Shown here in pieces: positions 5,304-28,055 of a stretch of DNA of 64,000 bases. Every line of letters begins with the position of its first letter. The stretch's first letter is position 1. Under the pieces are notes generated by a model, which saw only the letters and a program-made list of their open reading frames with translations, was not told where the DNA came from and did no database searches. The stretch lies in the IMG/VR virus record IMGVR_UViG_3300005941_000003, positions 181,964 through 245,963 of that record. One strand, written 5' to 3'. Position numbers and translations under genes: made by a program.

Positions 5304-5328
5304 AAGTTAGAAGTTAATAGGAGTTACT

Positions 5329-6054
5329 ATGTTATACGCAAATGGATGCAGTTTTACATACGGTACAGGTCTTGCACTAAAAGATAAAGCATGGCCTTTT
5401 GAACTAGCAGAGTTGTTAGGTTTCGATAGAACAGAAACAGTCACGGAAGCACAACGAGGCGTGTCAAATCAATACATTGTACGCAATACGATCACGACAG
5501 TTAGTGAACTTATACAGAATGGTAAGAAGCCATTTGTTGCTATTGGGCTAACTGCACCCAGTAGACGCGAACATTTTATAAAGGAAAAGAATATTCTAAT
5601 TCACAATATTCCTGCACATGAGTATCATGGTAACATTATGTTAGATGAACAAACAAACAGAGATTTAGATTTGTTTAACACTCTATACATGAAACATTTC
5701 TGGTCACCAGTTTATGACTTTCATACATACTTGATGCATGTGGTACAGATACAAAACTTCTGCAAACAGAATGATCTAGAGTATGTTATATTCAATAGTT
5801 TGAACTTGACTCCAAATCTTCTTGAACCTACTAAGTTTACAGAACTTTGTGAGCAAGCGGACATGGGTCCGGTACTTGCACAATTAGATATGACACATAT
5901 ATATGAACAGCAGACATTCTTTACATACATGCACGACAACGAACTGTTCTTTGACCAAGAAGGCGATGAACGATACATGCATCCAAATGAACAAGCACAC
6001 AGTGAGTGGGCAAAGATCATATTCGATGATATCGAAAACACACGGAACATGTAA
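5329..6054 (+). CDS. SGNH/GDSL-hydrolase-like protein
   Basis: N-terminal ANGCSFT, central GVSN, C-terminal HPNEQAH. Confidence 0.6.
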   Translation: MLYANGCSFTYGTGLALKDKAWPFELAELLGFDRTETVTEAQRGVSNQYIVRNTITTVSELIQNGKKPFVAIGLTAPSRREHFIKEKNILIHNIPAHEYHGNIMLDEQTNRDLDLFNTLYMKHFWSPVYDFHTYLMHVVQIQNFCKQNDLEYVIFNSLNLTPNLLEPTKFTELCEQADMGPVLAQLDMTHIYEQQTFFTYMHDNELFFDQEGDERYMHPNEQAHSEWAKIIFDDIENTRNM

Positions 6055-6956
6055 TGCGTATTGCGGTCCTACTCACTGGTAGAATATTAGTTGATGTGGC
6101 AGGCCGTATACGCGAATGCTTCCCGGGAGCAGATTTCTATGGTCATACTTGGAGCGATGACGTTTCTCCAATAAAACTATCTGATATTATTGAAGAACAC
6201 GTAACTAAAAATACAAAAGAACCTATGAATGCGTCACCGGAGTTGTGGAAAAAACATATTAAAGTTAACAACAATGTACATTTAGTTGAAAATTATAAAT
6301 TTGTAAAAGGTATGGCATTAACTAGTTACAATGAATTGATAGACGACTATAGCAATATACAGCAACACATACCAGAAGGATGTTCGCCGTATTATATATC
6401 GCTTATGTCCCAGTTTTTAAGTTTGAAGTATGCGTTATCAGAACTTAAAAAAAGTTCTAAACAGTATGATATAGTAGTCAAATGGAGATGGGATTTAGTT
6501 GGTAATACGGATATGAGTGAATTCCTGTCAGCACAATTAGAAAATTTTGACGGTATGATGGTACCATGGCATGTAAAAGATGAGTGTGCCAAAGAGGCAC
6601 TTGATAGATTAAATAGTTTGGACAATGTGTCAATGAATTATATGCCTGAGCGAACTGGAGAAACTTGGTTTGCGTTAAAATGGAAAGATTTACATTTACT
6701 TGATACATTTTATAAGTCTTACAGTGATGTACTATTAGAGCGTATTCAATATGACAAACATAGTCCAGATGCAGAAGGTTATTTTGCACTAATGCTAAGT
6801 AGGAACAATATTAAAACAGCAGTGGCAGGACATGACCAAGGTATATGGTGTGATATCGTAAGACCGTATCATCCAAAAGACGTAGACGTTTTAGAATTAA
6901 AAGATGTAATACACAATGCTTGGTTTCAGGGAATAATAGATTTAGAAAAAAACTAA
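6054..6956 (+). CDS. Hypothetical, possibly glycosyltransferase-like protein
   Basis: MRIAVLLTGR...YDIVVKWRWDL pattern; overlaps upstream stop codon. Confidence 0.45.
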   Translation: MRIAVLLTGRILVDVAGRIRECFPGADFYGHTWSDDVSPIKLSDIIEEHVTKNTKEPMNASPELWKKHIKVNNNVHLVENYKFVKGMALTSYNELIDDYSNIQQHIPEGCSPYYISLMSQFLSLKYALSELKKSSKQYDIVVKWRWDLVGNTDMSEFLSAQLENFDGMMVPWHVKDECAKEALDRLNSLDNVSMNYMPERTGETWFALKWKDLHLLDTFYKSYSDVLLERIQYDKHSPDAEGYFALMLSRNNIKTAVAGHDQGIWCDIVRPYHPKDVDVLELKDVIHNAWFQGIIDLEKN

Positions 6957-6989
6957 GTATGGACTACTCTATAATTAAGGAGAATAGTA

Positions 6990-7112
6990 ATGAAACTATT
7001 GAATAAAATATGGGAAATTATCACATACCCATATACAGAATATAAACGAAAAAAAGCACTAAAGGCGCGTATTGAAGAACTACGAAAGCGTGATCCATTT
7101 ATCTACAAATAA
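6990..7112 (+). CDS. 40-aa small protein MKLLNKIWEIITYPYTEYKRKKALKARIEELRKRDPFIYK (below the ORF-track cutoff)
   Basis: AAGGAG RBS, ATG 6990, TAA 7110-7112; fills the gap before the carbamoyltransferase. Confidence 0.75.
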   Translation: MKLLNKIWEIITYPYTEYKRKKALKARIEELRKRDPFIYK

Positions 7113-7121
7113 GAGAAACGA

Positions 7122-8630
7122 ATGAGAATATTAGGTATTTCTGGCGCGTTGAATCATGACGCAGCCGTTTCAGTGATTGAAGATGGTAAGATACTATTTG
7201 CATCACACAGTGAACGCTACAGTAAGATCAAGAATGATGCATTGTTAAACGATGGTATCATCAATGAAGCGTTGTCATATGGTAAGCCAGACCGTATTGC
7301 TTGGTTTGAGCGACCATTAAAGAAGAAGTACCGTCAGTTTCTAGCTGGACAATACGAACTTGCATTCGCAGGAAGTGAGTGGCCTAAATGGTATTTAAAT
7401 AAAAACTTCCCGCAGTTGAATGGTATCAAGATAGACTATCAAGATCACCACTACACTCACGCCGCAAGTGGTTACTATACGAGTGATTTCGATGATGCAT
7501 GTGTTGTTGTGATAGATTCAATAGGTGAGTTTGAAACTCTTACTATATGGCATGCCGAGGGTGAGCGTATGACTAAGATTTTCTCTCAAGAATATCCACA
7601 TTCAATTGGTCTTTGGTATAGTGCAATGACACAGCGTTTGGGATTGAAACCACAAGAAGATGAATACATTCTTATGGGTATGGCAGCGTATGGGGATAGC
7701 CGTAGGTTCTTCAAAGAAATTGTAGACGAATTCATACTTGTTGAGGGTATAGGATACTCACCGGAAACATACTTCAAACACAATCTTCATCGTGGGTGTT
7801 TGTGGTGGAAGCCAGAGTTAACGAGTGAGCAAGACTTGTTCGACATTGCTGCTGGTACACAAGCAGTGTACGAATATCTATTAAAGAACATCATTGCATG
7901 GTGTGTTAGAAACATTCCAAGCAGAAATCTTGTGATGATGGGCGGCTGTGCGCTAAACTGTAGCGCAAACTCAAAGATCACATATCAATATGATAATGTG
8001 TGGATCATGCCAAATCCGGGAGATGCTGGTAGTTGTATCGGTGCGTCACAACAATACTTTGATGATAGAATCAAGTGGGAAACTCCTTATCTAGGACATG
8101 AGATTAAAGGTCTATATCCTGTACAGAAAAGTTTAGAAGCATTGCTACGCGGAGAGATTATTGGTATCGCAAATGGTCGTGCAGAGTTTGGTCCACGTGC
8201 GCTAGGTAACCGCACTCTTACGGCAGATCCACGCGGGGACGATATTAAAGATCGTATGAATGAAATCAAACGTAGACAAAAGTTCCGTCCTTTTGCTCCA
8301 ATGATTCTAGAAGAACATGTTCACGAATACTTTGATATGCCACGACACATAAACGAATCACCATATATGCAGTTTGTTGCAACATGTAGATTCCCAGAAC
8401 TGTTCCCAGCAATCATACACAAAGATGGAACATCACGCGTACAGACCGTCAATCGTGAGCAACATCCGGGTCTGTATGAACTGCTAACGAAGTTCTACGA
8501 AGCGACAGGATGTCCTATCCTAGTCAATACATCACTGAATATCAAAGGAATGCCGATAGTCAATGACGAACAAGACGCAGAAGATTTTGCGAAGCACTAT
8601 GGCATTTCAGTCTTTACATCCGACGAATAA
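7122..8630 (+). CDS. Carbamoyltransferase, NodU/CmcH (TobZ-like) family
   Basis: ILGIS..HDAA, HHYTH, GGCALNC, EFGPRALGNR, FRPFAP, NTSLN. Confidence 0.95.
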   Translation: MRILGISGALNHDAAVSVIEDGKILFASHSERYSKIKNDALLNDGIINEALSYGKPDRIAWFERPLKKKYRQFLAGQYELAFAGSEWPKWYLNKNFPQLNGIKIDYQDHHYTHAASGYYTSDFDDACVVVIDSIGEFETLTIWHAEGERMTKIFSQEYPHSIGLWYSAMTQRLGLKPQEDEYILMGMAAYGDSRRFFKEIVDEFILVEGIGYSPETYFKHNLHRGCLWWKPELTSEQDLFDIAAGTQAVYEYLLKNIIAWCVRNIPSRNLVMMGGCALNCSANSKITYQYDNVWIMPNPGDAGSCIGASQQYFDDRIKWETPYLGHEIKGLYPVQKSLEALLRGEIIGIANGRAEFGPRALGNRTLTADPRGDDIKDRMNEIKRRQKFRPFAPMILEEHVHEYFDMPRHINESPYMQFVATCRFPELFPAIIHKDGTSRVQTVNREQHPGLYELLTKFYEATGCPILVNTSLNIKGMPIVNDEQDAEDFAKHYGISVFTSDE

Positions 8631-8641
8631 TCTGTTATAAT
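8613..8641 (+). promoter_or_regulatory. Sigma70-type promoter TTTACA-N17-TGnTATAAT
   Basis: Consensus match upstream of the 8670 ORF. Confidence 0.6.
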
Positions 8642-8669
8642 ACAAGAAAATGAAACTATAAGGACAACT

Positions 8670-11486
8670 ATGGCCTACGACGGATTTTACCTAACATACA
8701 AAAACGATAGAGAGACGAATGATCGTTTCGACCGCGTTTCTGGGGATTACCCAAACTTCAAACTAGTAAAAATCAATCTTGAAGACATGAGCAATCCAAA
8801 GATTGTTGACGCCGTGATGAAGATTGCGTCACTTGTGAATACTAAACACTTTTGGGTTATTGATCCAGAGGTAGTACCAGGCGACGACTTTGATTTTAGT
8901 TACACTGCGACCGAATACGATGAAATGTATACGCAGCTTTGGAATGCAGATGAACGTGATATGTTCAAGCAAGTAGTAGGTGTAAAACTTTTCAACCGTC
9001 TTGATGTTCTAAACAAAGGCAGAGAGTATGTAGAAGATGCATACTATATGCGCGACGAATTTAAACTACATGAAAAAACTTTAACATATTCTCCAACAAA
9101 AGAGACGTATGATATTTTCTATTGGAAACGTAACTTTGGTAACGAGAACTTAAAGAAACTAAAAGCACGACATGATAATATCAATATTGTCATGGGTGAA
9201 AACATTATGCAGGTTCATGAAAAGTGTCGTGCGGTAGCGCGTACTGATTTCTACTATCTTGTATATCCTGATACAGATGTGAACGAAGATTTTGATTTCA
9301 GTTACAATTTCGAATTTGGATTAGATAAAGAAAATCAAAAAGTTGCGCTATGGCAAAAAGTAAATCCAGTAACCGGATATGCTAGAGAGTATCACGGCAT
9401 TGGTCTATTCCCGACACAACGTGACATGTTTGATGAAACCGCGTACAAAAAGTTTTACTTCAAAAAGGATGGGGTGTATGATGTACATCCTGCGTCGAAA
9501 GACATACCGTTTGAGCAACATCGTGTTGGTAGAATTGCAGAAATGGATGCAATGCTTGTACATGCGGTTGACACTGAAATGTTTTGGATGATTGATGAAC
9601 AAGTAGAACCTTATCAAGACTTAATTGATGAATTCTATCCTTTCAGTTATGACAGAGATAAGATTCATAACTTTAATGTAAAACTACCTAATGGTAAGAT
9701 TGTAAGAAACGGTGTGCGTCTTATCCCTAAAAACTATGATATGGATTTGCAGAAAGACATGGACATGGTAATGGGTGAAATGCAACCATTTGATATCGTA
9801 CACGGCAGATCAGTTGAGGAATGTATATCTAAATCAAAAACTCACAGATTTTGGATGGTCAACCCAGACCTAGATACAGTACAAGATATCAATAAACTAA
9901 TCGATGAAATTGGAGTTCCTGATCTATATGATATGGACTCCACTCAGATTTGGTCTTTTGCAGATATCAAAGGTGAGCGTGTTGGCTATGGCGGTCTTGC
10001 TCTATCAAGCAAGGCATATAACAAATATAATCTTTTACTAAAAGACGATATTATGATGAAGATACCAGAAGTGACACGTATCAAAGTTATTAAAACTCGT
10101 GATCCGTATCAAGCATATGTGCAAGCGGCAGGTGAAACATTCTATTGGGTAGTTGACACAATTGTTGAACTATTGGATGATTTCAAGTTCGACTACTATC
10201 CTGATATATTCAATATCGAAAACGTATTTGCATTTGCAAACGAATCTACAAACGAAACGACCACAGGTACATCTGGTGTGTATCTAGTTCACAGACCACA
10301 TCTATCTATCTATGAGTTATCAGAACGCGACTTCTCTTTTGATAGATTTAAAAATATGATATTCATTGATAAACCTGCAAGTAAAACAGTAGGCTATCCT
10401 GTATTTTATTTTGATGAAGGTCTATACAAAGAGAACACTGATTACTATAAGCAGTATGACTTTGTTGAAATTATAGACGCCACTGACGTTGGAGCAGCAT
10501 ACTTAAAAGCAGCAGAACTAGCACCTATGGGGTATTTCTGGGCGATAGATAATGATGTCAGAGTTAAAGACATGAACTTTGACCGCTCGTTCTATATTGA
10601 CAAGTTTCATAAATCACACTTCCACATGTGGCCAAAGGAAAACCCATACACTGGATTCGTACATCAATTTGGTGGATTGAAACTTATACCAGCAGAAGCA
10701 ATCAAAGAACTCAAACCAGACGCAGACAAAATTCGTAAGATGAATTTCAAAAACAAGCGTCCAGTAAGAGCAAAGACCCCACCATCTGCGGATATTCCGT
10801 ATGATGTTGTGTTCCTAAGTTACAACGAACCTTTTGCAGATGCTAATTACGAGAAACTATTACAGCGTGTACCAAATGCAAAACGCGTTCACGGTGTAAA
10901 GGGTATCTTTAACGCACACAAACAAGCAGCGGAGTTAGCCGATACACGTATGTTCTATGTTGTTGATGCGGACGCGATACTGTTAGATGAATTTAATATT
11001 GAATACATGCCAACGATTTGGGACGAGGATATCGTGCATACTTGGAAGTCTAAGAACCCAATTAACGACTTGATCTATGGTTATGGTGGACTAAAATTAT
11101 TCCCAACAAAACTTTTACGTGAAGCAACAGATTGGCATATCGACTTTACAACGTCTATCAGCGAAAAATTTAAACCAATGCCAACAGCAGCGAACTACAC
11201 TGCATTCAATACAGATCCCTTTAACACATGGAAGTCGGCATTCCGTGAATGTACTAAACTAGCGTCAAGTATTATTCAGCGAAGCAAAGTTGATGAAAAC
11301 AAAGAGCGTCTAGATATTTGGTGTAACGTCGGATCAGACAGACCATTCGGTGAAGACGCCATCAACGGCGCACGTGATGGTAGAAAGTTTGGCATTGCAA
11401 ATGCAGATAATCCAGATGAACTATCAAAGATTAACGACTTTGAATGGTTGAAAGCAACATTTGAGGAAAAATACAATGGTAAGTGA
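8670..11486 (+). CDS. 938-aa protein of tandem GT-A-like (glycosyltransferase-like) repeats
   Basis: Repeated FWVID/FYYLV/FWMID/FWMVN/FYWVVD/FWAID/FYVVDAD segments each followed by GxxLxP-like motifs; DxD (DAD) in the last unit. Confidence 0.6.
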   Translation: MAYDGFYLTYKNDRETNDRFDRVSGDYPNFKLVKINLEDMSNPKIVDAVMKIASLVNTKHFWVIDPEVVPGDDFDFSYTATEYDEMYTQLWNADERDMFKQVVGVKLFNRLDVLNKGREYVEDAYYMRDEFKLHEKTLTYSPTKETYDIFYWKRNFGNENLKKLKARHDNINIVMGENIMQVHEKCRAVARTDFYYLVYPDTDVNEDFDFSYNFEFGLDKENQKVALWQKVNPVTGYAREYHGIGLFPTQRDMFDETAYKKFYFKKDGVYDVHPASKDIPFEQHRVGRIAEMDAMLVHAVDTEMFWMIDEQVEPYQDLIDEFYPFSYDRDKIHNFNVKLPNGKIVRNGVRLIPKNYDMDLQKDMDMVMGEMQPFDIVHGRSVEECISKSKTHRFWMVNPDLDTVQDINKLIDEIGVPDLYDMDSTQIWSFADIKGERVGYGGLALSSKAYNKYNLLLKDDIMMKIPEVTRIKVIKTRDPYQAYVQAAGETFYWVVDTIVELLDDFKFDYYPDIFNIENVFAFANESTNETTTGTSGVYLVHRPHLSIYELSERDFSFDRFKNMIFIDKPASKTVGYPVFYFDEGLYKENTDYYKQYDFVEIIDATDVGAAYLKAAELAPMGYFWAIDNDVRVKDMNFDRSFYIDKFHKSHFHMWPKENPYTGFVHQFGGLKLIPAEAIKELKPDADKIRKMNFKNKRPVRAKTPPSADIPYDVVFLSYNEPFADANYEKLLQRVPNAKRVHGVKGIFNAHKQAAELADTRMFYVVDADAILLDEFNIEYMPTIWDEDIVHTWKSKNPINDLIYGYGGLKLFPTKLLREATDWHIDFTTSISEKFKPMPTAANYTAFNTDPFNTWKSAFRECTKLASSIIQRSKVDENKERLDIWCNVGSDRPFGEDAINGARDGRKFGIANADNPDELSKINDFEWLKATFEEKYNGK

Positions 11487-12429
11487 TATTCGCGCACGCC
11501 GCGCAGCAAGAGCAAATAAAAAGACTATTAAATCTAACGAAGAATTGTATGCGTCATTTGATGACACATCATTTCAAGATGAAATAGAATATACTACAGG
11601 TCCAGCGGTTGAAGAAGTAGTCAACGATGACACTTTAATGCTAAAAAATGCAATGAATAACGCCGGTGAAAACATTGTACCATATGATTACGTCAGAATG
11701 GCAAACACTTATTCTAAGATTAACGTTGAACAACAGTTGGGCAGCTATAGAAATGCTATGGAATTTTTAGCACACATTCAGCTTGCAGAGAATGATACTA
11801 TTGTTAAACGTTTGCAAGATTTGATTTACAACTATCCAAACTTTGATGTAAGTAGTTTTGTAAACACATCCGAAGCAAAGCTATACTCATGGGTTGTTAG
11901 TACAATGCGACATACACTTGGAAGAAAATATCTTGGTGCAGTTTATGTACTAGGTGGTGGTATCGGCATTCTGCCGGCAATGTTGCTTGATGCTGAAATG
12001 AACATCGAAACTATCAGAAACTTCGATATCAACGGTGCGTGTCAATTTATTGCAGATGAAATGATGCAACGGGAAGTATTAGCAGACTGGAAGTTTAAAT
12101 CCAGTACACAAGATATGTATGATATCGATTACGCTAAACATATCTTTATTACTAGATTACAGAACGGTGTTTTAAGCGCGCCATTTAGTGAAATACCCGG
12201 TACTATTATTAATACAAACGTAAGCCATTTGCATCATCCGATGGATTGGTACAACATGTTGCCTGACATGCGCAGAGTTATTATAGTAGGCGAAACCGAT
12301 CCTAGCTTACCAAACCCATTCCCGAATTCACAAACGTTCAATAAAAAATTCCCAATGTCGTTTGAAATCTATACTGGTGTTCTTACTGTCGGTGACAAGC
12401 AATACTATATGAAAATAGGTCACAAATAA
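11476..12429 (+). CDS. Class I SAM-methyltransferase-like protein (paralog of next gene)
   Basis: VYVLGGGIG, NFDIN, INTNVSH; ATG at 11476 preferred. Confidence 0.6.
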   Translation: MVSDIRARRAARANKKTIKSNEELYASFDDTSFQDEIEYTTGPAVEEVVNDDTLMLKNAMNNAGENIVPYDYVRMANTYSKINVEQQLGSYRNAMEFLAHIQLAENDTIVKRLQDLIYNYPNFDVSSFVNTSEAKLYSWVVSTMRHTLGRKYLGAVYVLGGGIGILPAMLLDAEMNIETIRNFDINGACQFIADEMMQREVLADWKFKSSTQDMYDIDYAKHIFITRLQNGVLSAPFSEIPGTIINTNVSHLHHPMDWYNMLPDMRRVIIVGETDPSLPNPFPNSQTFNKKFPMSFEIYTGVLTVGDKQYYMKIGHK

Positions 12430-12432
12430 AAT

Positions 12433-13428
12433 ATGAATGCATCTGATCTAATCAACCGTTATGCAATGTTATACGGTGACAAGTTCCCAACTATACGGGA
12501 ACTTGAACGTGCAATAAACTCAAGCGAACTGTCAAGTGTGTTTAAGCTAGTAGCAGATGCTACATCCTCAGAAGAAAAAGCACAATTGATTAACGATTTG
12601 CGTAACATAACAATTGAACGTCCAAACATACATTTACTTTTCAGACTTATGGAAGCAATTGATCCAGACAATGAAAAGATAGAATTGTTGCGACATAACA
12701 TTGTATTGAAATCTAAGATACACGAAACTATTGACGAAGTGACTATGGGACAATACTTGATTCCATCTGGTATCAGACGACTAACCAGTAAGTTTGATGG
12801 TCCTGCACTTACTGATGCTCTTAGTCAAGGACAGATTGAAAGTAAACTGTGGCTTGTTAATACTGTTGCAGAACTAGACTTGGACTTGGGAAAGATGGTA
12901 TATGTCTGTGCAGGTTGGTACGGTGTTCTAGCAGCGTTGATGTTTGAACGTATATCAAATCGCTTTGGTAAAGTATACAGCTTTGATATTGATCCAAGCA
13001 CAGAGAACCCAGCCGATCAGTTGAATAAAGAGTATGTTGAAGTTAGCAGTAGGTTCAAAGCAATCGTAAAAGATATTCATGAACTTACGTATAAGAATGA
13101 AATACACGATGTAATTTATTACAAGTATCACACCGAACAGTCTTATGAAATCAATATGACTGAGGTTGAAGCAGACGATGTTACTTGTGTAATCAATACG
13201 TCCTGTGAACACGTTGAGAACTTTGAAGAATGGTGGGATAATATTCCAAAAGGTATGCGTGTGATTATGCAGAACAACAACTTTGTAGAACATGACGATC
13301 ACACTGTGGTAAATACAATCAAAAGTGAACAGCGGTGGGTAGACAAACTAAACGTTTCGAAGTTACTATATCGTGGAACACTATCTCTCCCCAAATATAA
13401 TCGCTTCATGGTAATGGGAATAAAATAA
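12433..13428 (+). CDS. Class I SAM-dependent methyltransferase
   Basis: GQIESKLWL, VCAGWYG, SFDID, INTSCEH. Confidence 0.7.
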   Translation: MNASDLINRYAMLYGDKFPTIRELERAINSSELSSVFKLVADATSSEEKAQLINDLRNITIERPNIHLLFRLMEAIDPDNEKIELLRHNIVLKSKIHETIDEVTMGQYLIPSGIRRLTSKFDGPALTDALSQGQIESKLWLVNTVAELDLDLGKMVYVCAGWYGVLAALMFERISNRFGKVYSFDIDPSTENPADQLNKEYVEVSSRFKAIVKDIHELTYKNEIHDVIYYKYHTEQSYEINMTEVEADDVTCVINTSCEHVENFEEWWDNIPKGMRVIMQNNNFVEHDDHTVVNTIKSEQRWVDKLNVSKLLYRGTLSLPKYNRFMVMGIK

Positions 13429-14525: not shown

Positions 14526-14559
14526 TAAATAAGTGCAGATATAATAAAGGCGAATATTA

Positions 14560-16850: not shown

Positions 16851-16882
16851 AATAAATACGAATATAATTCTAAAGGCATACC

Positions 16883-17731: not shown

Positions 17732-18816
17732 TGTCAATAATGAATAGAATTGATAAAATAGAACTTGAGATAACTAGCGATTGTAATGCTCTGTGTCCCG
17801 GGTGCGCTAGAACGCAACATTTGGATAAAATAACAGTGCAAGATTTTGTTCTTGAAGATTTGAAGCGTATATTACCTACAAGAGAATATATTGATGGGAA
17901 GATATTCAAATTCTGTGGTGTTCTGGGTGATCCTGCTGCAAACGTAGAATGTCTTCCAATGGTAAAATATCTAGTGGAGAATGGAGGTTGGTGCCAGTTG
18001 AGTACAAATGGTGGAATTCAACCTGCTGCTTGGTGGAGAGAGTTGGGTGAACTGTCAGCTAGAACAAATAGTGTTGACGTTTCATTTTGTATTGATGGCC
18101 ACGAAGAAACAAACCACATCTATCGTGTTGGTACAAAATTTAGTACAATAGATAGAAACATTCAGGCATATAGTGACGGTGGTAACGGTATTGCATCTGC
18201 GACTTGGATTTATATTGTTTTTGATCACAACGAACATGAACTAGATAAAGCGAGAGAACACGCAGAAAGACTTGGATTCAAGTTTGCAACTCGTACAGGT
18301 ATGCGCAACAGCTATCACAACTGGGTTTCTGTCACTAAAAAGAAAGATAAAGAAACCAAGAAGATTGTAGAGGAAGTTAAGACCATTACAACAACTGGTG
18401 CGAAGGAACACTCAAAGAAAAAAGAAGTTGAAAAGATTGATCAATTCATTAAAGCCTACAGTAAAGGTAAAGAGATAGATCAAGAAAAGAAACTAGAAAT
18501 GATTAAGAGTATCACCTGCAAGATGATACACGAAGCAGAGATATTCATTGCAGCAGATCAAACAGTATGGCCTTGCTGTTTCTTACATGATAGCGCAGTA
18601 AAAAATCAAGATGCAATTAACGATAAACTTGCACAGTTTGGTGATAACTGGAATAGTCTAAAGCATCATACACTTGAAGAAATACTGTCCCACGTTTGGT
18701 TTAGACAATTGATAAGACTAAGTTGGGATCCAGAACATGAAATGCATTTGAAACGTTGCGTAAGAAGTTGTGCATCTAATAAAGCATATCAAAACGAAAT
18801 AAATTATGAATCTTGA
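17731..18816 (+). CDS. Radical SAM protein, paralog of 13428-14525
   Basis: CNALCPGC, GVLGDP, FDHNEH, PCC; ATG 17731 overlaps upstream TAA. Confidence 0.9.
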   Translation: MSIMNRIDKIELEITSDCNALCPGCARTQHLDKITVQDFVLEDLKRILPTREYIDGKIFKFCGVLGDPAANVECLPMVKYLVENGGWCQLSTNGGIQPAAWWRELGELSARTNSVDVSFCIDGHEETNHIYRVGTKFSTIDRNIQAYSDGGNGIASATWIYIVFDHNEHELDKAREHAERLGFKFATRTGMRNSYHNWVSVTKKKDKETKKIVEEVKTITTTGAKEHSKKKEVEKIDQFIKAYSKGKEIDQEKKLEMIKSITCKMIHEAEIFIAADQTVWPCCFLHDSAVKNQDAINDKLAQFGDNWNSLKHHTLEEILSHVWFRQLIRLSWDPEHEMHLKRCVRSCASNKAYQNEINYES

Positions 18817-18841
18817 CATTTCAAGAACAATCGCGTATAAT
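18813..18841 (+). promoter_or_regulatory. Perfect sigma70 promoter TTGACA-N17-TATAAT, directly preceded by GAATC
   Basis: TTGACATTTCAAGAACAATCGCGTATAAT. Confidence 0.75.
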
Positions 18842-18863
18842 AGAGACTAAAGAGAGATTATTA

Positions 18864-20282
18864 ATGGCAAATGAATCAATACCATGTTTCTATAGTTTTC
18901 ATGGTCTAAACTATAAAAACGGATATGTAACCACATGTCCGACTCAAACAGACCAATTCTATCTCATTGAAGGTAGAGAAAACCTACCATCTAATATATT
19001 CAATTCTCCAGGTTTCAGATTGCATCGCAAAGAAATGGTTGCAGGACAATGGTCTGAAGGTTGCCATTTGTGTGAAGAAAATGAACGTTGCAATCTACGT
19101 TCCATGCGACATGATTTCACTGCGGGTCAATGTGATCCAAAACAGTATACAGTGTTTGAAGGTATTCCAACAGACATGTACAACTATGAAACAGGCGAAA
19201 TGGATTTTGCTGGATTGCGACATGTTGAAATACGTTTTAATAATAGTTGCAACATGGCGTGTTTACATTGCGACCAAGTATACTCTAGTGGTTGGGAAAC
19301 GAAATTAAAATCTTACGAACCAACTGAACTAGATCATAAGCACGGTCTGCATCAGATAACTGGTCTACGCCACACTGACCGACAAGGTAACAAACTACCA
19401 AGAATTGATTTAAAAATGGATGAAGTCGAAATGATCATTCGTGATCTAAATGAAAACTTCCCAAATATTATGAAGATTGATTTCTCTGGTGGCGAAGTAC
19501 TAAAACAAAAGCAATTTTTCCTTGCACTTGATCTACTTGCTGAACACCCTAATGCAAAGAATATGGAAATATTCTTCTATACAAACTTTAACGCGGACTT
19601 CGATCCAGTTTCACTTTCGGAAAAGCTATCTAAATTTAGAAATCTGTCATTGAACATTTCAGTTGATGCTGGTAGAAATATGTATTCATATTTCAGAGAC
19701 GGGTCTTGGGATAAACTTGTAGAAAATTTAAACAAGTTTATGTCAGTACACAAGAAACCATCGAATATAAAGACTATAATTACAACATCGATTTATCAAG
19801 TGTTAGGAATTGTAGATGTGTTTCAATCTCTAATGACCCTTGATGTTGATATTATCGACTGGGCGCCAGTGCAATCACCTAGACAATTAAATCCAGCGTT
19901 AATAACTTTACACCATAGAGATTATATTGTTGCAGAGTTTGATAAGGTAAAGAAACTTATCTATGAAAACAGGTCCCGCAGGAACAATGAAATAAAACAA
20001 GGTAAAAAACTGAGAGGCTTTTTCTACAGCGGTGACAAACCAAGTTACGATGAATTATCCCATTCTTTAGATCGTTCCCTTAAAGAAATGTCACAGTACG
20101 TATTATCGGGTGTAATTCAAGATGAAGCAAATTGGGAAGCATTTTTACACTATGCAGGTACTGTAGATGGAATATTCAAAAAAGATTTTAACCAATCTGC
20201 ATTTAAAGACTTTAGATTAATAAAGACGCCAGAAGGCAATCAGTTACAGCGTTTAACAAACGGACCAGAGACACAGGAGTAA
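18864..20282 (+). CDS. Radical SAM protein with N-terminal twitch-like domain
   Basis: PCFY..TTCP, CHLC, CNMACLHC, FSGGE; start moved to ATG 18864 downstream of the promoter. Confidence 0.85.
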   Translation: MANESIPCFYSFHGLNYKNGYVTTCPTQTDQFYLIEGRENLPSNIFNSPGFRLHRKEMVAGQWSEGCHLCEENERCNLRSMRHDFTAGQCDPKQYTVFEGIPTDMYNYETGEMDFAGLRHVEIRFNNSCNMACLHCDQVYSSGWETKLKSYEPTELDHKHGLHQITGLRHTDRQGNKLPRIDLKMDEVEMIIRDLNENFPNIMKIDFSGGEVLKQKQFFLALDLLAEHPNAKNMEIFFYTNFNADFDPVSLSEKLSKFRNLSLNISVDAGRNMYSYFRDGSWDKLVENLNKFMSVHKKPSNIKTIITTSIYQVLGIVDVFQSLMTLDVDIIDWAPVQSPRQLNPALITLHHRDYIVAEFDKVKKLIYENRSRRNNEIKQGKKLRGFFYSGDKPSYDELSHSLDRSLKEMSQYVLSGVIQDEANWEAFLHYAGTVDGIFKKDFNQSAFKDFRLIKTPEGNQLQRLTNGPETQE

Positions 20283-20285
20283 ATC

Positions 20286-21293: not shown

Positions 21294-21296
21294 TAG

Positions 21297-22616
21297 ATGT
21301 CTAAGACTTTTTGTCCTATTCCTTGGATGTTTATGGCAGCACGTTCTAACGGAGATGTTAGAGTGTGCTGTCAAGCCAATGTAACAAAGAATAAAGGTGT
21401 TATCAGAAAACCGGATGGAACAGCATATAATGCTGGTAGAGACGATTTAGTTGAGTCTCGCAATGCTGAAATGATGAAGGCAATGCGAGTAAACATGCTA
21501 AACGGAATCTGGAGTGAAGAATGTGGACGTTGCAGAAGTGAAGAAGAAAACGGTTTAGACTCACGCAGAAAATACGAAATAGACAAGAAGATGTATTCGT
21601 TTGAACGTGCAGTAAATGAAACTGCGGAAGATGGTACAATTGATGTTGACAAAACAGAAATCATGTTCTACGATTTGCGCTTCGGTAATTTCTGTAATCT
21701 AAAGTGTCGCATGTGTGGTCCAACTGATAGTGACTCTTGGTACGACGATTACATGAAACTAACAGGAACTGATTCATTTTGGGAAACAAGTGGACCAGTT
21801 AAGATTTATCCTAAAGGTAATAAGCTAGTAGCAGATGGTTACGACTGGCCTAACTATGAACCTTTCTGGGAATTCTTGGAAAAGAATGCAAAGAATATCA
21901 AACACGTATATTTTGCAGGCGGTGAACCAATGTTAATTGAGCGTCACTATGATTTTCTTGAACGTTGTGTTGATCAAGGTGTTGCAAAAAACATTGTTAT
22001 AGAGTATAATACAAATATGAGTACTCTACCAACACGCGTAACGGAATTATGGAAGAACTTTAAAATGGTTCAGATAGGTGCAAGTGTTGATGGTATGGGA
22101 CCTGTTCTAGAATATCAACGTAATCCAGCAAAATGGGATAAGACGCTTCGAAATCTAAAGACTGTAGATGGTTTGCCAATGAATATCATGTCTTGGTTGG
22201 CTGTTACTGTTACAGCATATAATGTTAATCATCTTATTGACTTTATGAAATGGAAATTACAAGAGAGTGAATTCAAGCGTATAAGCTCAACAAAGAAACG
22301 TCCTATAATGACGCACCATGTAGCGCATCACCCAAAGCATCTAAATATACGTGTTCTACCCGACAAGATGAAATCTGAACTTACACAGAAGTATGAAGAT
22401 TTTGTTGTCTGGGTTGAAGAACAGGGATTCCCAGAATATGTAATTGAGGCTGCCAAACACGCACGTGATAGCATATGTAGTTATATGAATAGCGATTCAT
22501 ATCACGCCGATCATTGGGATGAGTTTGTAGACTATACTAATAAATTAGATAAAATAAGAAACGAAAGTTTGATTGAAGTCGAACCTATGTTTAAGGAATA
22601 TATAAATGAGTTTTGA
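21297..22616 (+). CDS. Radical SAM protein with N-terminal twitch-like domain
   Basis: FCPIPW..VCC, CGRC, CNLKCRMC, FAGGEP. Confidence 0.9.
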   Translation: MSKTFCPIPWMFMAARSNGDVRVCCQANVTKNKGVIRKPDGTAYNAGRDDLVESRNAEMMKAMRVNMLNGIWSEECGRCRSEEENGLDSRRKYEIDKKMYSFERAVNETAEDGTIDVDKTEIMFYDLRFGNFCNLKCRMCGPTDSDSWYDDYMKLTGTDSFWETSGPVKIYPKGNKLVADGYDWPNYEPFWEFLEKNAKNIKHVYFAGGEPMLIERHYDFLERCVDQGVAKNIVIEYNTNMSTLPTRVTELWKNFKMVQIGASVDGMGPVLEYQRNPAKWDKTLRNLKTVDGLPMNIMSWLAVTVTAYNVNHLIDFMKWKLQESEFKRISSTKKRPIMTHHVAHHPKHLNIRVLPDKMKSELTQKYEDFVVWVEEQGFPEYVIEAAKHARDSICSYMNSDSYHADHWDEFVDYTNKLDKIRNESLIEVEPMFKEYINEF

Positions 22617-23877
22617 TACAGTTGACCTATTAACTGGCGATATCTTTCAGGTATCATGGGACCTTGGGCGCAGATGCAACTACGACTGTAGTTATTGCCC
22701 AGTACACAGACACGACAATTTTAGTCCACATGCAACATTGCAAGAGTTGAAGAACAGTACAGACTTCTTGTTCAAGTACATGGACACCTATCTAGAACAT
22801 AGAACACTAAAGGGTGCAAGTATTAGCTTCACCGGTGGTGAACCTACTGTAAACCCTAACTTTATTCCATTCATTGAATATCTTAAAAAAGCATATGCAG
22901 AACAATATGCAGATCGTTGGGATTCCTCATTTGCTTTAACAAGCAACGGTGCAATGAGTAAGAAGATGGCTAATGCTGTTATCGAACATTTCCATCACAT
23001 CACTGTTAGCTATCATGCAGAAAGTGATGACAAGCTAAAGAAGCAAGTGCGTGATCGTATTCTACAGTTCCATGAAGCAATGCATAGCAATCCTGAAGGC
23101 TTCTTCTCAGTGTCGGTAAACGTTATGTTTCACGCACAATACTTTGATGAATGTGTTGACCTTTGCAGATTCCTAGAGAAGCACAGCGTCAAATATGTTC
23201 CTCGTGTTATTGGCGAAGAACCAGAAAGTCCAAGCGATCAAGCACACCGTTATAATGATGCACAAATCCAATGGATGAAAGATTACTGGAATGACAAGAA
23301 CGCTGCATTGAACGATCCTACACCAAAAGATGTACAGATTGAATCACAACATGCAGTGACACAAGTTAATACTGAAGGTAAGTCAGAACCAAAGAAACTT
23401 GCTATGACTATTGGTCGTCCTTGCTGCGGATCACGCGAAATGTGTCTATCTAGTCAAGGTGATACTCGTAAGAGTACATTCGTTAATTTCAGAAACTTCA
23501 AGGGTTGGCATTGTTCTGTTAACTGGTTTTTCCTACACCTTGAACAACAGACTGATAGTGTATACCATCACCAAACGTGTCAAGCTAAATTTGATCAAAC
23601 TAGAGGTCGTTTAGGTAAGATTAGTGAAGGTGATAAGATTATAGATAAGTTAAAAGAACAACTTGCAGCAAAAGAAATGCCAACTGTTATCTGCCCAAAG
23701 CAAACATGCGGTTGTGGTCTTTGCGCACCAAAGAGTGCATTTAAAGAAAAGTATTTTGAAACACTAGATCGTCATATTGTAGATATGTCAATCTTTGATA
23801 ACAGTAAGAACGAAGTGAGTAAAGTTACTCCACTAATTCCCGGCGTAAACTTTGAAATGGATAGCGATATTCTATGA
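22606..23877 (+). CDS. Radical SAM protein
   Basis: CNYDCSYC, FTGGEP, C-terminal CPKQTCGCGLC. Confidence 0.9.
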   Translation: MSFDTVDLLTGDIFQVSWDLGRRCNYDCSYCPVHRHDNFSPHATLQELKNSTDFLFKYMDTYLEHRTLKGASISFTGGEPTVNPNFIPFIEYLKKAYAEQYADRWDSSFALTSNGAMSKKMANAVIEHFHHITVSYHAESDDKLKKQVRDRILQFHEAMHSNPEGFFSVSVNVMFHAQYFDECVDLCRFLEKHSVKYVPRVIGEEPESPSDQAHRYNDAQIQWMKDYWNDKNAALNDPTPKDVQIESQHAVTQVNTEGKSEPKKLAMTIGRPCCGSREMCLSSQGDTRKSTFVNFRNFKGWHCSVNWFFLHLEQQTDSVYHHQTCQAKFDQTRGRLGKISEGDKIIDKLKEQLAAKEMPTVICPKQTCGCGLCAPKSAFKEKYFETLDRHIVDMSIFDNSKNEVSKVTPLIPGVNFEMDSDIL

Positions 23878-25055
23878 CAAAAGAAATTCAAAAAGATGCA
23901 AACTACTGGTCACAATATGATTTCACTGAAATTCCATATCATGACTTAGTTAAAGTAGGACAGCGTACACTTTTATATAGAGATTTGTTTTCGGTGTCAT
24001 GGTTGCTAGGTCGTTTCTGTAACTACAAGTGTTCTTATTGTTGGCCTTATGCTCGTTCTGATCGTAAAGACCATCGCCCAACAGAACTATGTTTAGCGAC
24101 AATTGATGAAATAAAGAGGCAAGCCCGTGACAATGGTTTCAATAGTTTTCACTTTAGTCTTTCTGGGGGTGAGCCTACGTTTCACCCAGGATACCTTGAC
24201 ATTCTTAGACACCTTGCTGATGATGTTGGCAATACTAACTATACTTCTGTACATATGACAACAAACATGTCACGTAATTTAAAGTGGCATCAGGAATATT
24301 GTGATACAGTTGCAGCATTTCACCGTGCAAGTATCACTGCGTCATATCATAGCGAATATGCGAAGAAAGATGAATTTGCAGATAAACTTCTATTCTGTAT
24401 GGAACACGATGTTCAAGTGACAATCAATATGGTTCTTGTTCCTGAATGGTTTGATCGTGACTGGGAGAACGCAATGTACTTCCACAATCGTGGTATCAAC
24501 GTTACACTAAAGCCACAGTCTGATCCCACTGCATCATTCGTGGTTAAAGGTTATACAGACGAACAACTTGCTATCATGCGCAATGGTATGCCGCAACGCG
24601 CATATACTGATGAAATTCAAAAAGAAACTGGGGTGAAAGTTGTAAGACCTAAACCACACAAAAGCCTATGGACGATGGATGCAGAAAACGGTGACGACAA
24701 AAATGTTCCACCGATTATGCAAGTTGAGTTTGAGGATTCGACTGGTAAGAAATGGTATATGGATCAAGCAGAACGCTTCAATGCCTTTAACTTCAACAAG
24801 TTCAAAGGTTGGGAGTGTACAAGTGGGTTTAAGGGTATTGTTATTCGTGAACCAGATGGAACAATCAAACGTTCATATAGTTGTTCTGACCGACCACTTG
24901 GTTTCGTTGAGGGTGGGTTCAGACTTTTCGACTCGCCAAGACCATGTATCTCAGATAGTTGTGTATCAAGTGCAGACAGTAAGATACCAAAACGGGCACC
25001 GGGCGCGCAAGTGCCAATCTATCCCGGAGATCAAAGTTTTAAGTTCGGAATATAA
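23874..25055 (+). CDS. Radical SAM protein, paralog of the preceding gene
   Basis: CNYKCSYC, LSGGEP, FKGWEC, CISDSC. Confidence 0.9.
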   Translation: MTKEIQKDANYWSQYDFTEIPYHDLVKVGQRTLLYRDLFSVSWLLGRFCNYKCSYCWPYARSDRKDHRPTELCLATIDEIKRQARDNGFNSFHFSLSGGEPTFHPGYLDILRHLADDVGNTNYTSVHMTTNMSRNLKWHQEYCDTVAAFHRASITASYHSEYAKKDEFADKLLFCMEHDVQVTINMVLVPEWFDRDWENAMYFHNRGINVTLKPQSDPTASFVVKGYTDEQLAIMRNGMPQRAYTDEIQKETGVKVVRPKPHKSLWTMDAENGDDKNVPPIMQVEFEDSTGKKWYMDQAERFNAFNFNKFKGWECTSGFKGIVIREPDGTIKRSYSCSDRPLGFVEGGFRLFDSPRPCISDSCVSSADSKIPKRAPGAQVPIYPGDQSFKFGI

Positions 25056-25061
25056 GACAAT

Positions 25062-25086: not shown

Positions 25087-25088
25087 CT

Positions 25089-27065: not shown

Positions 27066-27068
27066 ACT

Positions 27069-28048: not shown

Positions 28049-28055
28049 GCGATTA

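Follow-up and report, generated by a model that had tools for sequence, protein, structure and literature searches.

Radical SAM (rSAM) enzymes combined with sugar and methyl transfer are described from RiPP, proteusin and mycofactocin pathways, where rSAM/SPASM enzymes, a GT2 and a methyltransferase act on a peptide. Aminoglycoside and nucleoside antibiotic clusters use a related palette, with TobZ-type carbamoyltransferases, twitch rSAMs like BtrN, BlsE-like rSAMs, aminotransferases, and C- and O-methyltransferases. In phages, comparable LPS-like gene clusters occur in cyanomyophages. One 2017 paper counts 12 rSAM genes in a marine phage genome similar to the one studied here, but our literature search found no published description of the system reported below.

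We examined a 64,000-nucleotide stretch (the window; positions 181,964 to 245,963 of IMG/VR record IMGVR_UViG_3300005941_000003) from a ~342-kb T4/Rak2-related huge phage found in marine, aquatic and algae-associated metagenomes. A first-pass annotation, made from sequence alone, had flagged a ~20-kb biosynthetic cluster at 5329-25055 with seven rSAM enzymes, and proposed that it builds an unusual glycan or a hypermodification on virion proteins, DNA or the host envelope, or a small molecule. The observation is confirmed, although its boundaries proved too narrow, and the interpretation is partly supported. Phage origin is confirmed by a Gp23-type capsid gene, a family-B DNA polymerase and baseplate genes.

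Gene content of the run

Seventeen plus-strand ORFs run through the flagged region with gaps of 39 nt or less and several overlaps (Table 1), and two independent gene callers on identical public contigs call the same genes, including the 40-aa ORF. The gene families had been read correctly in the first pass, and the run behaves as one system. All seven rSAMs have an intact CX3CX2C motif, and six pass the PF04055 cut-off; the exception, the 17689 gene (genes are named here by their start position), scores 19.7 bits but is a paralogue of the 13428 gene. Three of the seven pass the 170-bit cut-off of NF033640, an uncharacterised N-terminal-twitch (N_Twi) family.

The two QueC-like proteins have an SGGADS PP-loop, a C-terminal CxxCxxC and QueC-bearing viral look-alike clusters, but Pfam QueC itself is not hit. 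The methyltransferase-like (MT-like) 12433 protein has a class-I MT fold by look-alike structure only. The 8670 protein has four internal repeats, the C-terminal of which models as GT-A (pLDDT 87); its solved-structure matches at E <= 0.001 are GT-A glycosyltransferases, apart from the nucleotidyltransferase HddC at rank 2, but TM is only 0.28-0.45, so the GT-A assignment rests on low scores. The GT-like reading of the 6054 protein is a lead only, with TM 0.52-0.62 to clusters carrying GT8, GT34 or GT92.

The claim that late-promoter motifs punctuate the run was partly confirmed. The T4 consensus TATAAATA is absent from the region, but a genome-specific motif, GATAAATAC, is about 26-fold enriched upstream of genes. 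It heads the baseplate operon and the island described below, and sits upstream of the 5329 and 16883 genes and, more weakly, of the 14560 gene.

Table 1. Features of the run, the whole island and related features (window coordinates).
Position	Strand	Feature	Remarks
-36,239..25,055		Whole island	~61 kb; record coordinates 145,724-207,018
1222..3181	-	Same island, outside the run	Cytidylyltransferase-like plus mannose-6-P-isomerase-type cupin protein (1222-1989); N-terminal-twitch rSAM (1982-3181, 238 bits)
5295..5304	+	Promoter-like motif AGATAAATAA	25 nt upstream of the first gene; of the genome-wide GATAAATAC class
5329..6054	+	DUF6071 / SGNH-like hydrolase or acyl-esterase	241 aa; 34.8 bits (cut-off 27); N-terminal G-C-S-x-x-x-G and C-terminal HPN block; variable accessory gene
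6054..6956	+	Viral DUF7796-like protein, possibly GT-A-like	300 aa; paralogue at genome 174438-175376 (-); structural look-alikes only
6990..7112	+	Conserved microprotein	40 aa; invariant C-terminus ELRKRDPFIYK; coupled to the carbamoyltransferase
7122..8630	+	NodU/CmcH/TobZ-family carbamoyltransferase	Kae1-like N-terminal plus YrdC-like C-terminal domain; both Pfam domains, 141 and 180 bits
8670..11486	+	Protein with about four tandem GT-A-like domains	938 aa; C-terminal domain (residues about 712-934) best preserved, keeps a DxD motif
11461..12429	+	Methyltransferase-like paralogue of the 12433 gene	322 aa from the TTG start; 317 aa from the ATG at 11476, as called in public records
12433..13428	+	Class-I SAM-methyltransferase-like protein	331 aa; virus-specific family; core gene
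13428..14525	+	Core rSAM	Cys-rich C-terminal (SPASM/twitch-like) region
14524..14547	+	Promoter-like motifs AATAAATAA and GATATAATAA	Intergenic, upstream of the 14560 gene
14560..15990	+	Core N-terminal-twitch rSAM	NF033640, 423.7 bits; most conserved gene of the system
15990..16850	+	QueC-like PP-loop ATPase	
16851..16859	+	Promoter-like motif AATAAATAC	Followed by TATAATT; upstream of the 16883 gene
16883..17731	+	Protein of unknown function	282 aa; not conserved, found in 1 of 77 related loci
17689..18816	+	rSAM	Paralogue of the 13428 gene
18813..20282	+	N-terminal-twitch rSAM	NF033640, 191.7 bits
20286..21293	+	Second QueC-like PP-loop ATPase	Paralogue of the 15990 gene
21297..22616	+	N-terminal-twitch rSAM	NF033640, 369.7 bits; up to 52% identical to copies in Bdellovibrionota assemblies, 43% on a 3-Mb contig
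22606..23877	+	rSAM	CNYxCSYC motif; Cys-rich C-terminus
23874..25055	+	Core rSAM	Paralogue of the 22606 gene
25062..25087	.	GC-rich hairpin	A/T runs on both sides; acts as a two-way terminator between the island and the convergent thyA gene
58589..61394	-	Second, small rSAM pair	B12-binding rSAM (58589-60136); N-terminal-twitch rSAM (60162-61394)

The run is the 3' third of a larger island

The cluster is not 20 kb, but continues about 36 kb upstream of the window. The full island directly follows the baseplate wedge gene and a 2912-aa virion structural gene, on the same strand. It holds 17 of the 19 rSAM genes in the 246-kb record, so the first-pass count of seven understates the total. The record has 13 NF033640 genes, and the CX3CX2C motif is present throughout the rSAM set. 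Nucleotide-sugar synthesis and tailoring genes lie in the upstream part: two UDP-Glc/GDP-Man dehydrogenases, an SDR epimerase/dehydratase, a cupin isomerase, DegT and class-I aminotransferases, a TylC3-type C-methyltransferase, a TylF O-methyltransferase, a kinase-like protein, and NTP and cytidylyl transferases. With these are transferases of a divergent GT-A type, decorating enzymes (the carbamoyltransferase with its microprotein partner, SGNH-like and MT-like proteins), and the PP-loop ATPases. None of the 63 island proteins has two or more TM-like segments. The phage also carries an A-type Fe-S carrier.

The core is conserved in related phages and in bacteria

The first-pass annotation would have been refuted had gene content and order not been conserved in relatives, but a core is syntenic in about 70 of 77 non-identical related phage loci. 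Of the 77, the GT-A-like family is found in 68, the MT-like family in 70, the 13428 family in 76, the 14560 family in 77, PP-loop genes in 47-52 and the 23874 family in 58, and the same order appears in 353-kb and 472-kb contigs. Relatives share the DNA polymerase at 57-72% identity and carry 4-18 NF033640 matches each. The 14560 orthologue is more conserved than the polymerase, at 81-84% identity, and the 23874 orthologue is about 70-81% identical. Most of the nucleotide-sugar genes, however, are specific to this phage's island and are not seen within 10 kb of the core in other relatives, and relatives carry Asp/Asn-hydroxylase-type and TauD-type oxygenases next to the core that could act on proteins.

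The three core rSAMs also lie together in chromosomes of Bdellovibrionota, which are predatory bacteria. Their orthologues (46%, 62% and 64% identical for 13428, 14560 and 23874) are adjacent in a complete 2.9-Mb Bacteriovoracaceae chromosome and in a 328-kb Halobacteriovoraceae contig, where their neighbours are GT2 genes, a PMT_2-type GT-C, a QueC-like gene, an MT-like gene and the same GT-A-like family. A Bdellovibrionales contig adds NeuB, a CMP-sugar-type cytidylyltransferase and a carbamoyltransferase.

The 40-aa peptide travels with the carbamoyltransferase rather than with the rSAMs, even where no rSAM is nearby, and is absent within 25 kb of the three core rSAMs in the Bacteriovoracaceae chromosome. 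The DUF6071 family sits next to the peptide and carbamoyltransferase in another locus, L173, and in Ralstonia phage RsoM2USA, which has a mini-module. Carbamoyltransferase homologues occur in 145 phage records in the collection searched, most of them Synechococcus and Prochlorococcus phages.

Discussion

We tentatively favour, at somewhat less than even confidence, a late-expressed, cytoplasmic pathway that builds a hypermodified glycan, probably on virion proteins. The family assignments, the rSAM inventory, the position of the island and its shared motif, the synteny of the core and the lack of proteins with multiple TM-like segments are shown by our analysis, whereas the product, its acceptor, the catalytic steps and the timing of expression are inferred, the last only from a motif shared with the baseplate operon. 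In this view, activated sugars are made in the cytoplasm by soluble enzymes, and the rSAMs carry out the steps that need C-H activation, such as epimerisation, deoxygenation or dehydration, oxidation, and C-C or C-methyl bond formation. The QueC-like ATPases would adenylate carboxylates, for example turning uronic acids into amides or nitriles, and methyl, carbamoyl and acyl groups would be added. Because no island protein has two or more TM-like segments, assembly by the GT-A proteins would be cytoplasmic, most likely on baseplate, fibre or capsid proteins made at the same late time. The invariant core (GT-A-like, MT-like, 13428, 14560, PP-loop and 23874 genes) would make a common scaffold, which the variable rSAM paralogues would diversify between phages. 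The glycan option put forward in the first pass gains support from the nucleotide-sugar genes upstream and from the GT2, GT-C, NeuB and CMP-transferase neighbours in bacteria. The rSAM families have no characterised close relative, however: the best PDB profile hits are 33-50 bits and fold TM-scores are 0.45 or less, and the nearest solved neighbours include both peptide-modifying enzymes (TvgB, SkfB, CteB, SuiB, anSME, YydG) and sugar- or nucleotide-modifying ones (BlsE, DesII, viperin, MoaA, BtrN twitch).

An unlikely alternative, though the strongest of those considered, is that the rSAM, oxygenase, MT, GT-A and carbamoyltransferase set post-translationally modifies a phage protein or a short precursor peptide, with sugars as only one of several decorations. 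The nearest solved relatives of all three core rSAM families include peptide maturases, the top fold hit of the GT-A domain is the peptide S-glycosyltransferase SunS, a conserved 40-aa ORF with an invariant aromatic C-terminus sits inside the module, and the Asp/Asn-hydroxylase-type oxygenases lie next to the core in relatives. Against this, neither family searches nor structure-based comparison found an RRE, and the N-terminus of the N_Twi enzymes is an Fe-S twitch domain. The microprotein has no Cys, is invariant rather than hypervariable and does not track the rSAMs, and the island and its bacterial counterparts hold many nucleotide-sugar and GT genes.

Remodelling of the host envelope is somewhat less likely still. 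The phage could make unusual activated sugars that the host's own membrane machinery puts into lipopolysaccharide, capsule or another surface glycan, to block superinfection or alter the cell surface. The GT-C (PMT_2), LPG_synthase_TM, GT2 and NeuB genes beside the bacterial counterparts are typical of surface glycoconjugates, and the cyanomyophage LPS-like clusters and the prevalence of the carbamoyltransferase in cyanophage records fit this reading. However, the island has no flippase, polymerase, ligase, priming phosphoglycosyl transferase or any polytopic membrane protein, it sits with baseplate genes and shares a promoter-like motif with them, and a lytic huge phage gains little from late surface conversion.

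A diffusible aminoglycoside-, nucleoside- or cofactor-like metabolite acting on the host or on competitors is doubtful. The enzyme palette matches that of the antibiotic clusters described above, but no exporter-like membrane protein was seen among the 63 island proteins, and family searches of the 56 larger ones turned up no scaffold-forming enzyme (for example a 2-deoxy-scyllo-inosose synthase) and no resistance gene. Multi-domain GT-A proteins suggest decoration of a polymer or macromolecule, and the island lies next to structural genes.

Hypermodification of DNA to a glycosylated or 7-deazapurine-type base that protects the genome from restriction is the least likely reading: although QueC-like ATPases and weakly QueE-like rSAMs are present, thyA and DHFR adjoin the island and a QueD homologue exists elsewhere in the 342-kb record, no TGT/DpdA was found in the 92%-complete record or in four relatives, no hydroxymethylase candidate was found, the QueC-like proteins do not reach Pfam QueC, the only ThyA-family gene is a single canonical thymidylate synthase (catalytic Cys, PFNIAS Asn, full-length match) next to DHFR, and the bacterial counterparts are glycan loci.

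Gene content and family assignments

The finding consists of 17 plus-strand ORFs between positions 5329 and 25055, with gaps of 39 nt or less and several overlaps, and our assignments agree with the gene list of the first-pass annotation. Genes are named below by their start positions. All seven radical SAM (rSAM) genes of the finding, and all 19 in the 245,963-bp IMG/VR record, have the CX3CX2C motif of the SAM-cleaving [4Fe-4S] cluster. Six of the seven pass the Pfam gathering cut-off for PF04055 (29.5 bits), at 30.1-51.7 bits, and the 17689 gene scores 19.7 bits but is a paralogue of 13428. Three of them exceed the curated cut-off of 170 bits, across the whole model, for NCBIfam NF033640 ("twitch domain-containing radical SAM protein"; N_Twi hereafter), 14560 at 423.7, 21297 at 369.7 and 18813 at 191.7 bits, and thirteen genes in the record do so. 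The auxiliary-cluster (twitch) domain ahead of the rSAM core is predicted from sequence: C19, C100 and C103 are invariant, C37 and C38 are nearly so, and profile positions 7-83 align to the twitch domain of BtrN.

The carbamoyltransferase scores over the cut-offs for both Carbam_trans_N (Kae1-like, 141.4 bits) and Carbam_trans_C (YrdC-like, 180 bits) and matches phrog_1601 at E 3.7e-100, but reaches only 148.5 bits against an equivalog cut-off of 1000 bits for NodU (NF041651), so it is a member of the NodU/CmcH/TobZ family and not a NodU orthologue. The two PP-loop ATPases have an SGGADS loop, at residues 61 and 102, and a QueC-like C-terminal CxxCxxC, but neither gave a Pfam QueC (PF06508) hit at E <= 0.01, and only look-alike clusters carry that domain. 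The C-terminal domain of the 8670 protein was modelled with AlphaFold2 at pLDDT 87, and its solved-structure matches at E <= 0.001 are GT-A glycosyltransferases (SunS, RmlT, TarP/TarS, ppGalNAc-T and PBCV-1 A64R, 2p6w), apart from the nucleotidyltransferase HddC at rank 2, although TM-scores are low (0.28-0.45). The two aspartates of a DxD motif, D65 and D67, are invariant, whereas Pfam GT2 scores only 18 bits, below its cut-off, and a profile search of the PDB with this family returned nothing. PDB sequence searches with single proteins likewise gave nothing useful. The 5329 protein is over the cut-off for DUF6071, a family placed with the SGNH/GDSL hydrolases, and a GDS-like N-terminal block and a C-terminal DxxH/HPN block can be read in its sequence.

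Coordinates of the features. Genes of the finding are given by start position; G, C and L numbers are our labels for genome records, contigs and loci (G001, the 342-kb record; L082, a stretch of the phage record; L166, a locus with a homologue of the SDR-like protein; L169 and L170, related phages; L173 and L174, further loci with the microprotein; L175, RsoM2USA).
Frame	Coordinates	Strand	Feature
window	5295-5304		GATAAATAC motif
window	5329	+	DUF6071 / SGNH-like
window	6054	+	viral family whose predicted structure resembles GT-A families (a lead only)
window	6990-7112	+	40-aa ORF (microprotein)
window	7122	+	carbamoyltransferase
window	8670	+	938-aa protein with about four internal repeats
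window	11461	+	paralogue of 12433
window	12433	+	protein with a class-I methyltransferase-like predicted fold
window	13428	+	rSAM
window	14560	+	rSAM (NF033640)
window	15990	+	PP-loop ATPase, QueC-like
window	16851-16859		GATAAATAC motif
window	16883	+	unknown protein
window	17689	+	rSAM
window	18813	+	rSAM (NF033640)
window	20286	+	PP-loop ATPase, QueC-like, paralogue of 15990
window	21297	+	rSAM (NF033640)
window	22606	+	rSAM
window	23874	+	rSAM
window	25062-25087		GC-rich hairpin between the last gene and the convergent thyA gene
window	28654-30015	-	453-aa HNH endonuclease (phrog_1314)
window	55781-57190		469-aa cytidylyltransferase-like protein
window	57590-57597		GATAAATAC motif
window	58589-63068	-	second small gene group with two rSAM genes
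window	62328-63068	-	fatty-acid-desaturase-family protein of that group
record	90,422-107,188	-	six paralogous large proteins (409-1514 aa)
record	121,892-122,488	-	198-aa SDR-like protein
record	132,258-145,667	+	baseplate genes
record	145,724	+	start of the island
record	163,872-164,480 (L082:18872-19477)		DegT-family aminotransferase ORF
record	183,188	+	end of the first plus-strand array
record	207,018 (window 25055)	+	end of the island
G001:C1	74304-74603		A-type Fe-S cluster carrier gene, about 3 kb beyond the window's end
L166	8232-8807		homologue of the SDR-like protein
L169	18055-19894		Asp/Asn-hydroxylase-type and TauD-type 2OG oxygenases (with L170)
L170	19542-20183		Asp/Asn-hydroxylase-type and TauD-type 2OG oxygenases (with L169)
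L173	10001-10114		microprotein
L174	10001-10126		microprotein
L175	13891-13998	-	microprotein, in an annotation gap
OZ242254.1	1.405-1.430 Mb		Bdellovibrionota multi-rSAM / GT2 cluster

Extent of the island

The observation of the first-pass annotation holds, but the cluster it described as about 20 kb with seven rSAM enzymes is much larger. The record holds 19 rSAM genes, and our ORF map shows one plus-strand array that starts at the baseplate genes, is followed by a 4-kb reverse-strand block which itself holds another N_Twi rSAM and a sugar-nucleotidyl-transferase/cupin gene, and then resumes on the plus strand to the end of the finding. The upstream part encodes nucleotide-sugar chemistry: a cupin sugar isomerase, a DegT-type aminotransferase fragment, a TylC3-type NDP-hexose C-methyltransferase, a TylF-type O-methyltransferase, two UDP-glucose/GDP-mannose dehydrogenases, an SDR epimerase/dehydratase, an APH-like kinase, a MobA-like nucleotidyltransferase, a class-I/II aminotransferase, a GDSL-like protein and a redoxin. 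The DegT ORF is only 202 aa and covers positions 24-115 of the 360-position profile, so it may be truncated or split, and eight upstream genes had no family hit. Ten more rSAM genes are interspersed among these genes, and several families of the finding (8670, 6054 and the N_Twi family) have paralogues upstream.

The window is bases 181,964-245,963 of the 245,963-bp record. Identical sequence occurs on 341-342-kb contigs from many samples, and the genome is therefore about 342 kb. It is that of a tailed phage, as shown by a Gp23-type major capsid gene, a family-B DNA polymerase 49% identical to that of Sinorhizobium phage Phosso and 46% to that of Atu_ph07, and a baseplate wedge gene and a 2912-aa virion structural gene with relatives in PA5oct- and Rak2-like jumbo phages. 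DNA runs that hold the sequence are labelled marine, aquatic and algae metagenomes.

Promoter-like motifs

The T4 late consensus, TATAAATA, has 2 matches in the window and none in the region of the finding, which is below chance, and a sigma-70-type scan was at chance level. A different motif, GATAAATAC, is the most enriched 7- to 9-mer upstream of genes in this genome, with ATAAATA occurring in 30 of 116 upstream regions, about 26-fold over expectation. It lies 20-35 nt before start codons and heads the baseplate operon, the island, the 5329 and 16883 genes and, more weakly, the 14560 gene, and it is likely this phage's late-type promoter. Late expression is thus plausible but inferred, and no RNA run was listed. 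A second class, TATAAT[AT], is about 10-fold enriched and precedes the genes at 8670, 14560 and 16883, and a related TATAATT lies upstream of 6990.

Conservation in related phages

The 14560 protein has 2,531 homologues at E <= 1e-5 in a set of 5.8 billion proteins, of which the best 120 are all at least 80% identical. IMG/VR holds 219 loci, of which 80 were retrieved. The five long records that we examined share the DNA polymerase at 57-72% (100% for the copy of the same phage) and carry 4-18 NF033640 matches each. This is a clade of large phages, and in it the 14560 orthologue (81-84%) is more conserved than the polymerase.

Families found within 10 kb of the 14560-type gene in 77 non-identical loci.
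Family	Loci with it
GT-A-like	68
MT-like	70
13428 rSAM	76
PP-loop	47-52
22606/23874 rSAM	57-58
SGNH-like	0
6054-like	0
16883-like	1
carbamoyltransferase	2

The last four families are largely specific to this phage and its closest kin, although the carbamoyltransferase count is an underestimate, because that gene often lies beyond the 10-kb flank and appears again, in the same order, in 353-kb and 472-kb contigs. Gene order is kept, running (peptide, carbamoyltransferase), GT-A-like, MT-like, rSAMs, N_Twi-14560, PP-loop, further rSAMs, and rSAM-23874 at the end, with a varying number of intervening rSAM paralogues. Conservation of content and order had been set beforehand as the test of a coherent system, and the loci satisfy it. 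Related phages also carry Asp/Asn-hydroxylase-type and TauD-type 2OG oxygenases next to their rSAM arrays, further oxidative tailoring enzymes not present in this window's stretch.

Among cultured phages, megablast of the 20 kb and tblastn of the 22606 rSAM gave no match, and the 14560 rSAM gave only 22% hits. The cultured 344-kb jumbo Ralstonia phage RsoM2USA (MG752970.1), however, carries a mini-module at genes 199-203: a DUF6071-like gene, an N_Twi rSAM 51% identical to an island paralogue, an unannotated microprotein ending RKQDPFIYK, a second DUF6071-like gene and a carbamoyltransferase (51%). It has one rSAM instead of 17, and no counterparts of the three core rSAMs, the PP-loop genes or the GT-A-like genes were seen in the 28-kb stretch examined. 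The five genes are all annotated as hypothetical and are not mentioned in the genome paper.

Bacterial counterparts

A search of bacterial genomes with a single N_Twi paralogue found nothing, but a scan of one genome per prokaryotic species with a six-paralogue alignment found relatives overwhelmingly in Bdellovibrionota (Bdellovibrionales, Bacteriovoracaceae, Halobacteriovoraceae and Oligoflexia), some on complete chromosomes and megabase contigs and often in arrays of up to 10 rSAM genes. Orthologues of three core rSAMs are adjacent there, 13428 at 46%, 14560 at 62% and 23874 at 64% identity, for example in OZ242254.1 and PASP01000006.1, together with further N_Twi paralogues. In OZ242254.1 (2.9 Mb), ten rSAM genes in a row are followed by GT2 genes, a PMT_2-type GT-C and an FAD amine-oxidase-like gene. 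In a 328-kb Halobacteriovoraceae contig the three core rSAMs sit with four GT2 genes, a QueC-like gene, an MT-like gene (35% to 12433) and the same GT-A-like family (37%), and a Bdellovibrionales contig adds NeuB, a CMP-sugar-type cytidylyltransferase, LPG_synthase_TM and a carbamoyltransferase.

The phage island is thus a viral relative of an unstudied bacterial glycoconjugate locus, which amounts to kinship and not to an explanation. The bacterial loci add membrane glycosylation proteins (PMT_2 GT-C, LPG_synthase_TM), classical GT2s and the FAD amine-oxidase-like gene, whereas the phage island has none of these and is fused to a nucleotide-sugar toolbox. The concentration of NF033640 rSAMs in these predatory bacteria (our bacterial genome loci L088-L165) may hint at the phage's host or at cluster-level gene exchange. 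Some MAG contigs with 72-77% orthologues (Crocinitomicaceae, Neisseriaceae, "MED685") also carry a few other genes of this phage and may be mis-binned phage fragments. Homologues of the SDR-like protein encoded far from the island (35-43%; 25% for the L166 copy) sit inside several bacterial rSAM clusters, so it is a possible unlinked member of the pathway.

A microprotein beside the carbamoyltransferase

The 40-aa ORF belongs to a real gene family, with 41 clusters on contigs of up to 472 kb, and the C-terminus ELRKRDPFIYK is invariant in all 21 aligned members. A pattern scan of 3.16 Mb of six-frame translation hit nothing else. The ORF gave no tblastn hit in cultured phages, and it was a regular-expression scan that found it in RsoM2USA. 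It sits directly beside the carbamoyltransferase in this phage, in loci L074, L079, L148, L161, L169 and L173, and in RsoM2USA, where only the DUF6071-like gene 200 separates the two. The family always sits beside phage or bacterial carbamoyltransferase genes. In a 122-kb phage contig the pair occurs with no rSAM nearby. It is therefore more likely a partner or acceptor of the carbamoyltransferase than an rSAM precursor peptide.

Interpretation and comparison with known systems

The interpretation offered by the first-pass annotation, a multi-step pathway for an unusual glycan, hypermodification or small molecule, is partly supported: the system is coherent and conserved, it is most likely directed at glycans, and it is probably virion-associated. 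Most of the family memberships, the extent of the island, the conserved gene order and the bacterial counterparts come directly from the sequence comparisons, whereas the GT-A-like and SGNH-like assignments, the chemistry of the enzymes, cluster binding by the twitch domains, late timing, the acceptor and the still unidentified product are inferred. Position next to the baseplate genes and the shared promoter-like motif favour virion decoration, a reading that we hold only tentatively. Candidate acceptors include the six paralogous large proteins encoded directly downstream of the major capsid gene, which are candidate fibre or decoration proteins and the first of which carries the GATAAATAG motif.

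The rSAM families themselves are far from every solved enzyme (33-50 bits; TM 0.45 or less), and their neighbours include both peptide maturases and sugar or nucleotide enzymes. A fold search with the 14560 model matched only generic rSAM folds and cannot separate peptide from sugar substrates, so fold alone does not settle the substrate. We seriously considered the 40-aa ORF as a RiPP precursor, but no family search or structure-based comparison found an RRE, and this only small ORF travels with the carbamoyltransferase, occurs without any rSAM nearby and is absent near the three core rSAMs in OZ242254.1. A surface-polysaccharide assembly locus would need a membrane priming transferase, a flippase or transporter, and a polymerase or ligase, but none of the 63 island proteins has two or more TM-like segments in a crude hydropathy scan, from which we take the phage pathway to be cytoplasmic and to lack its own envelope-assembly steps. 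A 7-deazaguanine or glycosylated-DNA modification is unlikely, because TGT/DpdA (PF01702) is absent from the 92%-complete G001 and from the four relatives G002-G005, and the only ThyA-family gene is a canonical thymidylate synthase next to DHFR. A QueD homologue lies far away, in G001 only.

The closest relatives are the uncharacterised Bdellovibrionota loci, and the closest described concept is virus-encoded virion glycosylation, as in the fibril glycans of Mimivirus, the capsid glycans of chlorovirus PBCV-1 with its GT-A enzyme A64R, and glycosylated mycobacteriophage virions. There, too, the virus carries its own nucleotide-sugar enzymes, GT-A transferases and methyltransferases to decorate virion proteins in the cytoplasm, but none of those systems is known to contain rSAM enzymes, PP-loop ATPases or a carbamoyltransferase, whereas 17 rSAMs dominate the island described here. 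Aminoglycoside and nucleoside antibiotic pathways (TobZ; BtrN and related twitch rSAMs; BlsE; DesII) use the same enzyme families on sugars, namely a YrdC/Kae1-type O-carbamoyltransferase, rSAMs with auxiliary-cluster domains, aminotransferases, and C- and O-methyltransferases. That similarity is at superfamily level only (27-50 bits), the twitch domain is N-terminal rather than C-terminal, there is no scaffold-forming cyclase, and the setting is a phage structural-gene neighbourhood. Full-text literature searches found no description of the system, the only related item being the T4-like marine viral genome TARA_ERS488813_N000010 (183 kb), with 12 rSAM genes and an A-type Fe-S carrier (Nishimura et al. 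2017, PMC5332604). That paper counts them only as Fe-S-related auxiliary genes, and describes no cluster structure, family assignment, synteny, bacterial counterpart or function. One relative found here is 181,934 bp long. The phage studied here also has an A-type carrier, as does G002, and it could supply clusters to the 19 phage rSAM enzymes.

Virus-encoded glycan machinery is thus already known, but there is a real chance that the chemistry and the rSAM families are new. In a more far-reaching reading, which the evidence allows but which we consider doubtful, huge aquatic phages and predatory Bdellovibrionota share an undescribed biosynthetic system in which an expanded family of N_Twi rSAMs, with two further rSAM lineages, QueC-like adenylating enzymes and a divergent GT-A family, carries out serial radical C-H chemistry on sugars, to give a new class of hypermodified glycan or a glyco-conjugate on virion proteins. 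One enzyme, of the 14560 type, would make an invariant scaffold under stronger constraint than the DNA polymerase, and the microprotein would be an obligate partner or acceptor of the phage carbamoyltransferase. This would be the first viral glycan (or macromolecule-decorating) pathway built around rSAM chemistry, and would give a function to NF033640 and two other rSAM lineages that currently have none. The 14560 family alone has more than 2,500 homologues in public metagenomes. The same exact protein lies on ~342-kb contigs in dozens of marine and aquatic assemblies, and the core is more conserved than the replication genes, so it is likely to matter for infectivity, host recognition or virion stability in an abundant, uncultured phage clade. 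The link to Bdellovibrionota chromosomes raises a testable question about the host and about cluster-level gene exchange, and the mini-module of RsoM2USA gives an experimental entry point.

Other genes of the window

A second small group of genes lies away from the island, and comprises a B12-binding rSAM, another N_Twi rSAM and the desaturase-family protein. The 469-aa cytidylyltransferase-like protein has the GATAAATAC motif upstream. The HNH endonuclease lies among nucleotide-metabolism genes, downstream of thyA/DHFR.
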